From: Pseudomonas aeruginosa PAO1
GTDB lineage: Bacteria > Pseudomonadota > Gammaproteobacteria > Pseudomonadales > Pseudomonadaceae
NCBI RefSeq assembly: GCF_000006765.1
Contig: NC_002516.2
Direction: 5' to 3' (one strand)
DNA: 64,000 nucleotides
Of the stretch, positions 15,278 through 23,015 are shown one piece after another (the first letter of the stretch is position 1; the number at the start of each line of letters is the position of its first letter). A program made the position numbers and the translations under genes. Under the pieces are notes generated by a model. It had not been told where the DNA came from. It worked only from the letters and a program-made list of their open reading frames with translations, and did no database searches.

Positions 15278-15667
15278 CTAGGCGCCGCTGGCTTGCCGGC
15301 GACCCGGGCGGCGGCGCGCCCAGAGGGCGAAGTAGAGCCAGCCGATGACGAACGATGGCGCCACGCTCGCCAATGGATGCGGCGTGCCCGAGAGCCAGTG
15401 CAGCGCGGCCATCGGCGCGGTCAGCAGGAGCACCACCAGCAGGGGCGCCTGGCGTTGCGCAAGGCCGTGGCGGCGGCCGAGACATTGCAACAGGTACAGG
15501 CCGAAGCGCGTCGCCAGGAGACTCGCGGCGCCCTGGAGCAGGGCGGCGACGCCCATCCCGGCCAGGCCGCCGTCCTGGTTGGCATAGGCCGCCCAGGCGC
15601 CGTAGAGCACCGCGGCCGGCAGCGCCGCCAGCCACGGGTCGTCGGAGCGCTGCGCGAGTCCGCTCAC
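15278..15667 (-). CDS. Small integral membrane protein, 129 aa, last gene of the QscR-activated operon
   Basis: GTG start overlaps the upstream stop (GTGA); about 4 hydrophobic helices. Confidence 0.75.
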
Positions 15668-16401
15668 CGGATGATCCTCTGCTGCACGTAGGGTTCGGCA
15701 CCGGGCGCGAGGCGGACCATGCAGAGGATCTGGTCGCTGCTGCCGACGTGGGCGACGAAGTGGTCGTTGGTCCTGGCGTGGCTGGACATCGCCATGCGCG
15801 GGAAGAAATCCGGGGCGACGCTGCGTTGCCCGCCGGGTATCAGGCCGGTTTCCGCATCCAGGCGCAGGTTGGCGGACAGCGTGCCGACAACGTCGAGGGC
15901 CAGGTCGACCATGTCCGGGCTCTGGCGCGGCGCTTCCAGGTCCGGGTACAGCGTCGCTCCCGGGATCCGCGCGCTGAGGGCGCGGAACATGTTGTAGACC
16001 ACCGGGTTGTAGGTCTTCGCCACGATCAGTGGCGGCAGCCCGCCGTTGCGCTCGCTGACCTGGCGCAGGAAGAACTGGTTGATCCGCTTGAACAGGCTGG
16101 TGCGGTGGTAGCGGTCGACCACCATCGCCGTCCACAGGTAGAGGAAGCGTGTCGAGCCGCGGACGAAGTCCTTCGCGCCCAGGATGCCGATGATCCGTTC
16201 GCCCTCCGGGTCGGTCGCCAGCACCAGGTGGTCGTAGGTCTCGAAGATATCCGGCTGGTTGCCGAAGTATTGCAGCACGTCGAACTGCGGCATTCCCTCT
16301 TGCAGGTCGGCGACTATCTTGCGTTTGAAGCCCTCGGGGAATTGCCGTTCGCGGCTGGAGTAGTCGAGGTCGAAGGCGTTTTTCTGCGGATCGCTGGTCA
16401 T
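15664..16401 (-). CDS. Hypothetical protein, probable GNAT-like acyltransferase fold, 245 aa
   Basis: ATGA-coupled to the acylase gene. 'HLVLATD...IIGILG...FLYLWTAMVVDRYHRTSL' resembles the GNAT beta2-beta4 pattern. The fold is inferred. Confidence 0.7.
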   Translation of the reverse strand: MTSDPQKNAFDLDYSSRERQFPEGFKRKIVADLQEGMPQFDVLQYFGNQPDIFETYDHLVLATDPEGERIIGILGAKDFVRGSTRFLYLWTAMVVDRYHRTSLFKRINQFFLRQVSERNGGLPPLIVAKTYNPVVYNMFRALSARIPGATLYPDLEAPRQSPDMVDLALDVVGTLSANLRLDAETGLIPGGQRSVAPDFFPRMAMSSHARTNDHFVAHVGSSDQILCMVRLAPGAEPYVQQRIIR

Positions 16402-18827
16402 GGTCGTGGCTCGCCGGAGGAAGAGGCTGAAGGGCGCAGGACCAACTGGCGGTCCGTCGCGTCGGGGGCGTCGTCGGCGATACGGATGTACGCGCCGCGG
16501 GCCCAGAGTTCGTTGAGGTCGGTGGCGCCGTCGAACGGCAGGCCGGAGTTGCGGGTGGACAGCGCGTAGCGCGAGTTGTCGAAGTCCGCCAGGTCGATGA
16601 CCATCCGCAGGGTCGCGGCGATCCGGGTGTTGAACGGGTTGGCCGGGTCGCTGTAGTCGAAGCGCCCGACGTTGACGCTGAAGTTGTCGCCGCCCTTGTT
16701 GTTCTTCAGGTCGAACAGCGCGCGCAGCGGGGTCTTGTGGAAGGGCACGTGCTCGGCGAGGGCGGCGTGCGCCTCGCCCCACTTCCAGCCGCTCGGCGCG
16801 CTTCCGTGGGCGGCACGCAGTTCGTCGAGGGCGCGGCGCAACGACTGGTTCAGCTTGAGGTCGCAGCCTTGTTCCTGGCCGCACCAGAAGCGCAGGTCGG
16901 CCTGGCCGTCGAGGATCAGCCGGAGGAAACCGTCGTAGTTGCGCTGGTTCCAGCCGCTGGCCAGCAACTGCGTGCCGATCCTCGGTTGCAGCAGCTCGCG
17001 GGTGAAGGCGCGTACCCAGTAGCCGGCGATCAGTGGCGCGGCCAGGTCGGCGGCGGCCTGGTGGTTCCAGCCCTGGAGCAGGGCGAAGGCCTCGCTGGCG
17101 CGCAGTTCGGGGTCGCTGACCTGCTCCAGCATCTTCGGCAACAGGCTCGCCATCACGCTGGAGAACTCGTCGTTCTGCAACTCCAGGCTGTCTTCCAGGG
17201 TGCGCTGGCCGGGGCCGCCGAGCCACTCGCGGATGCGGTCATAGCGGTAGGGCAGGACCCAGTCGTGGCCGAAGTCGAAGGCATTGTCGGGCGGCACGAT
17301 GCGCTGGTTCGCCGTGGCGATGAACCCTTCGCGGGGGTTGAGGCTGCGTGGCTTGGCGCTTTCCGGAACGTAGCCGACCCAGTCGTAGCGGCTCTCCCAG
17401 CCGGGCGAGGGGGCCAGGCCATGGAGGTCGTCGTCGGCGCCGCGGAGCGGTACGCGACCGGCGGAGACGTAGCCGATGTTGCCCTCGACGTCGGCATAGA
17501 CCATGTTCTGCGGCGGTACGCCGAAGTTGGCGGCGGCGTCGAGGAACTGTTCCCAGCCTTCGGCCCGGTTGATCGCCAGCAGGCTCGGGAAGGTCTTGTC
17601 GTGACGGTCGAGGCCGGTCCAGGCGAGGGCGATCACCAGCCGGTCGCGCTGCGCCTGCGGCAGCCGCGCCGGTTCGTAGATGTCGCTGATCACCGGGCCG
17701 TGGCGGGTGCTGCGGACCTCCAGCGAGACCGTCTCGCCGTCGCGCACGGCGATGCGTTCCAGGCGCGTCTCGAAGGGCCGGTAGCCGTCCGGGGTCAGGT
17801 AGCGCCGCGGGTCCTGGGGATCGACGCGCTCCAGGTAGGCGTCCTGGATGTGCGAGCCGGTATTGGTGTAGCCCCAGGCGATGCGCTGGTTATGGCCGAT
17901 GACGAACAGCGGGGCGCCGGCGAAGTTGGCGCCGGTGAGGCTTAGGCCGGGGATCTTCAGGCTGGCCAGGTAGAAGGCCGCCGGGTTGGTCAGGCGCAGG
18001 TGCGGATCGTTGGCCAGCAGCGGCTTGCCGGTGGCGCTGCGGCTGGCGGAGACCACCCAGTTGTTCGAACCGATGCCTTCGACGTTGGAACCGGGCAGTT
18101 GCCCCAGCAGCTTGCCGGCGTCCGGCGTGCCGTGCAGGGAGCGGTACAGGCTGGCGTAGTCGCGGGTGGCCGGCGGCCGCTCGCCCGGATAGGGGGCGAA
18201 CACCTCGTTGATCCGCGCCAGGTCCAGGTGCTCGGCCAGCGCCAGGCGCTGCAACTGCATGCCCAGGTTGGCGCTCAGGGTCCAGGAATAGAGCAGGTGC
18301 AGGGACAGGCTGTCCACCGGCCCCCAGGGCCCCGGCCGTTCGTGGCGCACCAGGCTGAATTCCAGCGGCAGCGCCGCCGGGGCCAGCTCCAGATAGGCGT
18401 TGATCCCGTCGCTGTAGCGTTGCAGCAGGACGCGCGTGGGCGCGTCCAGGTTGGCGTAGATGCCTTCGGCGGTGCGTCGGAAGCCCAGGGTGCGGGCGAA
18501 CCTGTCCATCGGCAGGGTCTTGGCGCCGAACACTTCGGAGAGCGTCCCGCCGGCATAGCGGCGGGCGAACTCCATCTGCCACAGGCGATCCCTGGCGTGG
18601 CTGTAGCCGAGCAGGAAATAGCCGTCCTCCAGGCTCTGCGCGCGGATATGCGGGACGCCGGCGGCGTCCCAGGCGATCCGCCCCTCGTGTTCCAGGCCAT
18701 GGCCGACCTGGATCTCGCCGTACTTGAAGCCCAGCGGGACGGCCAGCAGGTAGACCGCGCAGGCCAGTAGCCCCAGCAGCAGGCCGCCGAGGGACAGGCG
18801 CCAGGCGTAACGTGCGTTCTTCGACAT
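16398..18827 (-). CDS. Penicillin acylase / AHL-acylase family Ntn hydrolase, 809 aa
   Basis: N-terminal anchor, 'GVPHIRA', 'ARDRLWQME', beta-chain N-terminal nucleophile 'G-SNNWVV' and 'LLANDPHL'. Confidence 0.92.
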   Translation of the reverse strand: MSKNARYAWRLSLGGLLLGLLACAVYLLAVPLGFKYGEIQVGHGLEHEGRIAWDAAGVPHIRAQSLEDGYFLLGYSHARDRLWQMEFARRYAGGTLSEVFGAKTLPMDRFARTLGFRRTAEGIYANLDAPTRVLLQRYSDGINAYLELAPAALPLEFSLVRHERPGPWGPVDSLSLHLLYSWTLSANLGMQLQRLALAEHLDLARINEVFAPYPGERPPATRDYASLYRSLHGTPDAGKLLGQLPGSNVEGIGSNNWVVSASRSATGKPLLANDPHLRLTNPAAFYLASLKIPGLSLTGANFAGAPLFVIGHNQRIAWGYTNTGSHIQDAYLERVDPQDPRRYLTPDGYRPFETRLERIAVRDGETVSLEVRSTRHGPVISDIYEPARLPQAQRDRLVIALAWTGLDRHDKTFPSLLAINRAEGWEQFLDAAANFGVPPQNMVYADVEGNIGYVSAGRVPLRGADDDLHGLAPSPGWESRYDWVGYVPESAKPRSLNPREGFIATANQRIVPPDNAFDFGHDWVLPYRYDRIREWLGGPGQRTLEDSLELQNDEFSSVMASLLPKMLEQVSDPELRASEAFALLQGWNHQAAADLAAPLIAGYWVRAFTRELLQPRIGTQLLASGWNQRNYDGFLRLILDGQADLRFWCGQEQGCDLKLNQSLRRALDELRAAHGSAPSGWKWGEAHAALAEHVPFHKTPLRALFDLKNNKGGDNFSVNVGRFDYSDPANPFNTRIAATLRMVIDLADFDNSRYALSTRNSGLPFDGATDLNELWARGAYIRIADDAPDATDRQLVLRPSASSSGEPRP

Positions 18828-22728: not shown

Positions 22729-22995
22729 ATTTATCTCCTCTTCCTTAGGGGCGGACGCCATGCGGAACTTTCATCGATACGAAAGGCCAGCGTCCTGTTT
22801 ATTGTCTGAAGCACTTCTCGGCAGGCTGCGGTTATCGCTTCGCTATATTCGGAAGGCGATCTCGGTCAGGCGTGGATAGCTTGTCCATGGTCGAATGGAG
22901 CGCTCTTTTTAATTGCCTCAGAATGCGCTTCGTGAAAATCGGCACGGACAATGAAATGCCTGGTCGAATTAAATTGTCACAGCCCGGCAGGGACA

Positions 22996-23015
22996 ACCTG
23001 CCCTTCCGGGCAGGT
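22996..23015. promoter_or_regulatory. QscR-binding lux-box-like site
   Basis: 20-bp dyad ACCTGCCC-TTCC-GGGCAGGT (perfect 8-bp arms, CT-N12-AG) upstream of the PA1897-like gene. Matches the reported QscR site as I recall it. Confidence 0.88.

Follow-up and report, generated by a model that had tools for sequence, protein, structure and literature searches.

A conserved seven-gene cassette beside qscR in Pseudomonas aeruginosa as a candidate small-molecule pathway under quorum-sensing control

The subject of this report is the locus beside qscR in Pseudomonas aeruginosa PAO1, contained in a stretch of 64,000 nucleotides of the chromosome (NC_002516.2, assembly GCF_000006765.1) that is called the window here. 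On the minus strand at 15278-22728, seven co-oriented and close-packed genes run from PA1897 to PA1891, and the evidence described below makes it fairly probable that they form a single conserved unit devoted to a small molecule. Genes are named by their P. aeruginosa PAO1 numbers, and the starts chosen are those that fit ribosome-binding sites and orthologs. PA1897 (22728-21961) encodes a membrane di-iron hydroxylase of the fatty acid (FA) hydroxylase/sterol desaturase family, PA1896 (21955-20786) a soluble enzyme of 389 amino acids (aa) from an unnamed family with a predicted fold of the type found in TyrRS, PvcA and cyclodipeptide synthases (CDPSs), PA1895 (20767-19493) a probable membrane di-iron oxygenase with His boxes from the fatty-acid-desaturase superfamily, and PA1894 (19476-18853) a 2-oxoglutarate (2OG)/Fe(II) oxygenase. 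They are followed by PA1893 (18827-16398), encoding an N-terminal nucleophile (Ntn) hydrolase of the penicillin-amidase family with an N-terminal signal or anchor segment, PA1892 (16401-15664), encoding a protein resembling GNAT-fold acyltransferases, and PA1891 (15667-15278), encoding a small hydrophobic membrane protein. The spacings from PA1897 to PA1893 are 5, 18, 16 and 25 nt, after which come two 4-nt overlaps (ATGA and, between PA1892 and PA1891, GTGA).

On the plus strand, divergent from these genes, lies qscR (PA1898, 23487-24203), whose product is a LuxR-type acyl-homoserine lactone (acyl-HSL, AHL) receptor with the domains Autoind_bind (PF03472, 1.6e-39) and GerE (PF00196, 9.9e-15). 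The lux box ACCTGCCCGGAAGGGCAGGT at 22996-23015, a perfect 8-4-8 palindrome about 268 nt upstream of the PA1897 ATG, is the QscR binding site, as established by a published DNase footprint and by chromatin immunoprecipitation sequencing (ChIP-seq). It is the sole exact match to the core CTGCCC-N4-GGGCAG within the 64-kb window and is identical in P. paraeruginosa. The tightly coupled seven-gene cluster under a perfect lux box that had been predicted from the DNA is therefore read directly from coordinates, spacings and palindrome. A copy of the core with one mismatch (CCGCCCAGCCGGGCAG) occurs at 27161-27176 inside the phz2 region; 0.95 such copies are expected by chance according to shuffles, and no meaning is attached to it. 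In the nearest genome compared, which shares 86% of the sampled words of the window, PA1897 and PA1895 are 100% identical and PA1896 is 99.7% identical (388/389). Public P. aeruginosa gene calls contain fused PA1897-PA1896 proteins of 645-647 aa, with frame changes at differing places, and fused PA1895-PA1894 proteins of 636 aa. They have the appearance of frameshift variants or of errors in assembly; in the window, at 21955-21963 and 19476-19569, the members of both pairs are separate and lie in different frames.

All seven genes are found in the same order, with a divergent LuxR homolog, at five loci of the fluorescens lineage (P. sputi, P. kilonensis, P. fuscovaginae, Pseudomonas sp. RHF3.3-3 and one metagenome-assembled genome), where the encoded proteins are 35-76% identical to those of the window. 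Identity is 72-76% for PA1897, 51-53% for PA1896, 66-68% for PA1895, 56-58% for PA1894, 57-58% for PA1893, 59-61% for PA1892 and 35-48% for PA1891, and the QscR homologs at the same position are 48-52% identical. The cassette is rare, being present in 2 of 34 species of the genus and in 5 of 401 sampled Pseudomonadaceae species. In every one of the five fluorescens-type loci, an rsaM-like gene (DUF4902) and luxI stand between the luxR gene and the PA1897 homolog, the CTGCCC-N4-GGGCAG palindrome is located about 60 nt before the luxI start, and 47 nt separate the end of luxI from the PA1897 homolog. Both genes, rsaM and luxI, are missing from this locus in P. aeruginosa and P. paraeruginosa, and tblastn detected no luxI or rsaM remnants in the 758-nt intergenic region between qscR and PA1897. 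Most simply, QscR would be the receptor left over from a LuxR/LuxI circuit that lost rsaM and luxI, with the cassette as the original cargo of this circuit, and QscR would now read the LasI signal to switch this cargo on, the direction of change being inferred.

The locus of P. fuscovaginae corresponds to a known system. Its LuxR homolog, 52% identical to QscR, is divergent from rsaM and luxI, which matches the published pfsR-rsaM-pfsI layout, and by this gene layout the locus is putatively taken as Pfs. Its lux-box core is the same as that at PA1897; the difference is that P. aeruginosa has neither rsaM nor luxI, nor any detectable remnant of them. No mention of the seven genes downstream of luxI was found in the published Pfs literature searched.

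A part of the cassette also occurs by itself. PA1896, PA1895 and PA1894 homologs stand alone, in this order, in two independent lineages, one of which consists of two closely related species whose loci (L007 and L008) are 96% alike and are counted once. Genes for LysE and a class IV aminotransferase beside this triad are not claimed as members, given a gap of 330 nt and the likeness of the two loci. The other triad, in a genome of the Pseudomonas family (G742), is deeply divergent, with identities of 31% for PA1896, 38% for PA1895 and 35% for PA1894, and is flanked by genes for a short-chain dehydrogenase/reductase (SDR), an EamA exporter, an S-adenosylmethionine (SAM) methyltransferase and a divergent MocR-type regulator. 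Furthermore, a natural fusion protein of 609 aa (P0320), found on three contigs, joins a PA1895-like domain (40% identity) to a PA1894-like domain (37%, E 2e-35). The triad and the fusion link PA1894 with PA1895 and PA1896 and so reach beyond the end of the published operon, PA1895-1897. In the seven-gene clusters and the triads alike, the PA1894 homolog invariably comes after that of PA1895.

More distant relatives, in Burkholderiales-type clusters, are associated with non-ribosomal peptide synthetase (NRPS) genes. On a plasmid of Massilia forsythiae (NZ_CP051686.1, 40000-70000), a two-module NRPS made of two proteins, with the layout A-T plus dock-C-A-T-TE, is encoded amid homologs of six of the genes; the products of these homologs are 44% (PA1894), 46% (PA1892), 53% (PA1895), 27% (PA1896), 33% (PA1893) and 29% (PA1897) identical to those of the window. 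Here the PA1894 homolog is located two genes upstream of the PA1895 homolog. The cluster also contains genes for a phosphopantetheinyl transferase (PPTase), an ATP-grasp enzyme, transporters and aminotransferases, and it has no LuxR or LuxI. On the metagenome contig L019, homologs of PA1897, PA1892, PA1895 and PA1896 are grouped around the same NRPS layout, and the PA1897 homologs in Massilia and L019 are 29-30% identical to the window protein. In P. aeruginosa itself, none of the seven gene products has an NRPS or polyketide synthase (PKS) domain by Pfam, and the region 14566-24203 holds no core synthetase. The NRPS and exporter contexts are what would be expected of an amino-acid- or peptide-type biosynthetic or tailoring cassette, not of membrane-lipid housekeeping. 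Thus the earlier idea of a biosynthetic small-molecule cluster without a core PKS or NRPS gains from the conservation en bloc, from the six families beside the Massilia NRPS and from the four in L019. Both the Massilia cluster and the G742 triad cluster (L037 15017-16447) have a divergent regulator that combines GntR with an aminotransferase fold (MocR type), which suggests control by an amino-acid-like ligand where LuxR is absent.

The families assigned to six of the products in the original prediction (FA hydroxylase, desaturase, 2OG-Fe oxygenase, Ntn amidase, GNAT-like protein and small membrane protein) are in line with the Pfam matches, His boxes, predicted folds and hydrophobic segments. 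PA1897 belongs to FA_hydroxylase (PF04116, 3.8e-29, 102 bits versus a cut-off of 31) and has the His boxes H89RARH, H103QLHH and H181RIHH together with hydrophobic segments, but it reaches only 64 bits against the model of the ornithine-lipid hydroxylase OlsE (NF052566), whose cut-off is 475. PA1895 has the His boxes H109TFH, H150VNEHH and H334DFHH and hydrophobic segments; it has no Pfam match of its own at E<=0.01, although FA_desaturase (PF00487) is found on many of its homologs, including a 50% identical one in L019 (38.8 bits versus a cut-off of 29.7). The nearest NCBIfam model for PA1895 is that of GntB (NF041365), the L-arginine gamma-hydroxylase, which matches at 3.4e-15 over 178 residues. 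GntB, a membrane di-iron enzyme of the guanitoxin pathway, acts on a free amino acid and shares the His-box membrane architecture of PA1895; PA1895, however, is far under the cut-off (56 bits versus 380) and is not an equivalog, so that the substrate is not transferable. PA1894 is a 2OG oxygenase (2OG-FeII_Oxy_3, PF13640, 1.2e-12, 49 bits versus 27) with the iron motif H124-L-D126 and a distal His, and it matches an uncharacterised 2OG oxygenase of known structure (PDB 6n1f) at 1.9e-38.

PA1896 has no Pfam or NCBIfam family and no sequence match among PDB chains. A predicted model built on 13 homologs (predicted local distance difference test score, pLDDT, 83) suggests that its C-terminal portion of about 260 aa adopts the class Ic aminoacyl-tRNA-synthetase-like fold common to TyrRS, PvcA/IsnA and CDPSs. 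Every known member of this fold binds either an amino acid or an aminoacyl group. PA1896 lacks the ATP motifs HIGH and KMSKS, since the loop after strand 1 reads CPDY and the chain ends short of the KMSKS position; together with the lack of a match to PF00579, this keeps it outside the class I aminoacyl-tRNA synthetases. PvcA and CDPSs likewise lack both motifs. Neither a 13-sequence profile of PA1896 nor a 115-sequence one, the latter compared with four PvcA proteins, revealed sequence homology to PvcA, PF05141 (IsnA/PvcA) does not match, and comparisons of the profile with TyrRS and TrpRS were not significant. Local hhalign paths pairing CPDY with the strand-1 loop of TyrRS and GDFE with a GDFT segment had a probability of <1%, and no claim is made from them. 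PA1896 also differs from CDPSs and class Ic synthetases in its signature motifs (CPDY, GxFE, QxxEY and DH), with no significant profile match, and from IsnA/PvcA in an extra N-terminal domain of 130 aa. Because the profile comparisons are not significant, PA1896 is filed in none of the PvcA, TyrRS and TrpRS families, with which it appears from the model to share the fold only. The analogy to the IsnA-IsnB pair of isonitrile pathways, represented by pvcABCD in P. aeruginosa, is likewise limited on the oxygenase side: PA1894 falls in PF13640, whereas PvcB is of the TauD-type family. An exhaustive profile search found relatives of PA1896 in 339 representative clusters at E<=1e-3 and in 105 at E<=1e-30, mostly of about 400 aa and almost all unnamed metagenome proteins. 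Judged by sequence, PA1896 is thus the founding member of a real enzyme family that has no name and comprises at least 339 representative clusters. The longer proteins of this family were scanned for informative fusion partners, and nothing usable was found.

PA1893 matches Penicil_amidase (PF01804) over its full length at 1e-202 (676 bits) and is therefore an Ntn-hydrolase; it has a hydrophobic segment at residues 16-34, and Ser254, the serine of its SNNW sequence, corresponds in alignments to residue 1 of beta chains of known structure. If the gene started at 18881 instead, it would overlap PA1894. Among proteins of known structure, PA1893 is closest to D-succinylase (7e-68) and glutaryl-7-aminocephalosporanic acid (7-ACA) acylase (1e-40), whereas PvdQ is matched at only 3e-20, and the model of PvdQ-type AHL acylases (NF051460) gives 80 bits versus a cut-off of 950. 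The literature counts PA1893 as the fourth Ntn-hydrolase homolog in P. aeruginosa and describes it as uncharacterised. PA1892 has no Pfam family; its predicted model (pLDDT 90) is consistent with a GNAT fold of unassigned subfamily, and the motif KTYNPVV is invariant. Distant PA1892 homologs (25-32% identity; L020-L029) occur in unrelated neighbourhoods with genes for SDR, aminotransferase, iron-containing alcohol dehydrogenase (Fe-ADH) and DUF2817 proteins. A still more distant one (22% identity, E 1e-12) is encoded on a plasmid of Enterobacter chuandaensis (NZ_CP097174.1, 82078-82740). PA1891, a hydrophobic protein of 129 aa, has no Pfam or NCBIfam family, the ESM atlas gave nothing reliable for it, and it is conserved only in the seven-gene clusters.

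Some neighbouring genes recur around these loci. PA1890 (14566-15189), which lies on the same strand 88 nt downstream of PA1891, encodes a GstB-like glutathione S-transferase (GST) with GST_N and GST_C domains and is a possible extra gene associated with the cassette. All five fluorescens-type loci have a copy 67-69% identical to it close to luxR (e.g. L006 5128-5748), and a copy at the edge of the Massilia NRPS cluster (L051 6595-7215) is 63% identical, a value above the 27-53% reached by the six cluster proteins there. PA1890 may be a further member of the cluster, or its recurrence may be a coincidence involving a widespread family. A gene of the PhzF family is located between the GST gene and luxR in the five fluorescens-type loci (L006 6297-7094, plus strand), and a 47% identical copy directly follows the PA1896-like gene on L019 (12374-13165, plus strand). 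The P. aeruginosa cluster has no PhzF ortholog; the only relative is phzF2 (29452-30228, 33% identity) of the phz2 operon, which starts with phzA2 (24646-25173) and adjoins qscR.

The locus and its phenotype are already known. QscR has a single ChIP-seq target, the PA1897 promoter; deletion of PA1897 or of PA1895-1897 copies the phenotype of a qscR mutant; mutants make AHLs earlier; and the operon deletion and the qscR mutant are both complemented by PA1895-1897, whereas PA1897 by itself does not complement (Ding et al., 2018; PMC6113619). These published genetics agree with the earlier statement that QscR dampens las and rhl quorum sensing through the linked operon, which was not known to have a defined product. 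A review of 2026 still describes as unresolved how QscR restrains quorum sensing. The anti-activation operon of Ding et al. (2018) is the same locus, with the same lux box, divergent qscR, first three genes and delay of las and rhl. That paper takes three genes as the unit and reports finding no homolog anywhere. The present comparison does find homologs; it shows conservation of a seven-gene unit, and the genes that hold together most tightly, PA1896-1895-1894, lie across the operon boundary. With respect to the literature searched, the new elements are the seven-gene conservation, the luxI-linked arrangement, the stand-alone triad, the fusion, the NRPS-linked relatives and the folds of PA1896 and PA1892.

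Whether the seven genes belong together bears on the question of one transcript or two. The original prediction spoke of one operon; the tight packing of the seven genes is in its favour, whereas the published unit is PA1895-1897 and a separate transcription start of PA1894 has been reported in PA14 (PMC6113619), so that a single operon can be proposed but not read from the DNA. The gap between PA1895 and PA1894 is 16 nt and has no terminator-like site. Contigs from RNA libraries bridge this junction in three runs of two studies, and one contig spans from the interior of PA1895 into PA1893. In published data, PA1893-PA1897 change together in four RNA-seq comparisons, and PA1891, PA1892, PA1894 and PA1897 change together in an array. 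If PA1895-1897 were the QscR effector operon and PA1894-1891 an unrelated adjacent unit, separately transcribed for a different job, the PA14 start and the sufficiency of PA1895-1897 for complementation would be accounted for. Such a division is nevertheless disfavoured and appears decidedly improbable, given that the seven-gene order is kept at five distant loci despite identities of 35-76%, that PA1894 still accompanies PA1896 and PA1895 in clusters devoid of the other four genes, that PA1895-like and PA1894-like domains occur in one natural polypeptide, that six of the families are found together in Massilia, and that the genes are co-regulated across a short gap.

Two other explanations concern the chemistry. 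AHL synthases draw on acyl-acyl carrier protein (acyl-ACP), and PA1897 and PA1895 might hydroxylate or desaturate acyl chains or lipid head groups, such as those of ornithine lipids, with PA1896 as an accessory, so that an altered pool lowers AHL synthesis or the activity of LasR or RhlR. The membership of PA1897 in FA_hydroxylase and of PA1895 homologs in FA_desaturase, as well as OlsE being the nearest NCBIfam model for PA1897, are in line with this, and a metabolomics paper of 2024 reports that overexpression of PA1895-1897 raises fatty acids and that exogenous palmitoleate or acetate lowers AHLs. However, the OlsE match is far under its cut-off, both superfamilies include enzymes with non-lipid substrates, the nearest model for PA1895 is GntB, and the partners that never vary are an enzyme with the TyrRS/PvcA/CDPS fold and a 2OG oxygenase. 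The neighbours of the cassette are NRPS modules, aminotransferases and amino-acid-type exporters, not lipid-synthesis genes, and the metabolomic shifts are broad and may be indirect, quorum-sensing state itself altering metabolism. Lipid remodelling is therefore considered unlikely, although it deserves some weight. The acyl-amide or lipid nature of the product that had been proposed is accordingly not established, since the fold of PA1896, the GntB model and the exporter neighbours point instead to an amino-acid-derived substrate. The proposal that the enzymes remodel or quench acyl-HSLs, the oxygenases modifying them and PA1893 cleaving them, fares worse. It is suggested by the membership of PA1893 in the Ntn-hydrolase family of PvdQ, QuiP and HacB, by the reported up-regulation of PA1893 with C10-HSL as the sole carbon source, and by the earlier AHL production of the mutants. 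On the other hand, the high-performance liquid chromatography behaviour of 14C-labelled 3OC12-HSL and C4-HSL was unchanged by cells expressing PA1895-1897, which showed the phenotype; only PA1895-1897 are needed in trans, with no extra acylase; PA1893 is much closer to D-succinylase and to cephalosporin and penicillin acylases than to the AHL acylase PvdQ; and the Massilia cassette accompanies NRPS genes without LuxR or LuxI. Remodelling of incoming signals, as originally envisaged, is thus disfavoured and seems very improbable.

The best explanation for PA1897-PA1891 is a single conserved cassette under quorum-sensing control whose products make or tailor a small molecule, rather than a three-gene operon with four unrelated genes. 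This is held to be more probable than its negation for the cassette as a whole, and each mechanistic step is held with less confidence. The cassette probably acts on an amino-acid-derived substrate, a view that rests on fold similarity and neighbours; it is favoured because of the PA1896 fold, the GntB model nearest to PA1895 and the position of the triad beside amino-acid-type exporters. PA1896, with its amino-acid-binding fold devoid of ATP motifs, would handle an amino acid or an aminoacyl substrate, which the membrane di-iron enzymes PA1897 and PA1895 and the 2OG oxygenase PA1894 would oxidise. More speculatively, PA1892 might N-acylate an intermediate, and exported PA1893 might strip the acyl group outside the cytoplasm, either for protection and deprotection or for maturation of a pro-form. 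The product would lower or delay production of both acyl-HSL signals. The suggested roles of PA1892 and PA1893 would resemble PvdQ-type maturation of pyoverdine and the activation of other pro-forms by exported hydrolases, with N-acylation in the cytoplasm and later cleavage of the acyl group by an Ntn-hydrolase that has been exported. The fold of the family, the Ser nucleophile and a signal or anchor segment are all present in PA1893, which is nonetheless nearer to D-succinylase and cephalosporin acylases than to PvdQ.

Several points weigh against the single amino-acid-based cassette. The amino-acid view lacks sequence homology of PA1896 to PvcA, TyrRS or TrpRS, and the GntB and OlsE matches are far under curated cut-offs. 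The bridging RNA-library contigs cannot show a single transcript, as carry-over of DNA is possible, and the start of PA1894 in PA14 as well as the fatty acid changes of the 2024 metabolomics paper favour other readings. Given complementation by PA1895-1897 and the separate start of PA1894, the quorum-sensing effect may not require the last four genes. All published complementation strains, however, retained PA1894-1891 on the chromosome (PMC6113619), and the complementation is therefore compatible with a role for these genes. The literature searched contains no defined product of the cluster.

A more specific version of the single-cassette explanation, considered quite unlikely as a whole, is that the product is a modified amino-acid-derived antimetabolite, formed by PvcA- or CDPS-like chemistry of PA1896 and the three oxygenases, and unmasked from an N-acyl pro-form by PA1893 in the periplasm, which throttles acyl-HSL synthesis generally. 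The throttle might act via the supply of SAM, methionine or acyl-ACP, or by direct inhibition of LuxI-type synthases. If so, the cassette would be a chemically encoded negative-feedback governor in a LuxR/LuxI circuit, kept by P. aeruginosa after loss of the synthase; it is read as a governor because the ancestral arrangement would co-transcribe the cassette with luxI.

The question of how QscR restrains quorum sensing thus becomes more directly testable. The unit of interest is seven genes, perhaps with the adjacent GST gene, rather than three, and the leads point to an amino-acid-derived metabolite rather than to a modified acyl-HSL. Three natural comparison systems are available, namely the luxI-linked cluster of P. 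fuscovaginae, the stand-alone triads and the NRPS-linked cluster on the Massilia plasmid. A product that proved to be a natural brake on acyl-HSL synthesis would offer a lead for anti-virulence chemistry and a new design element for synthetic quorum-sensing circuits.

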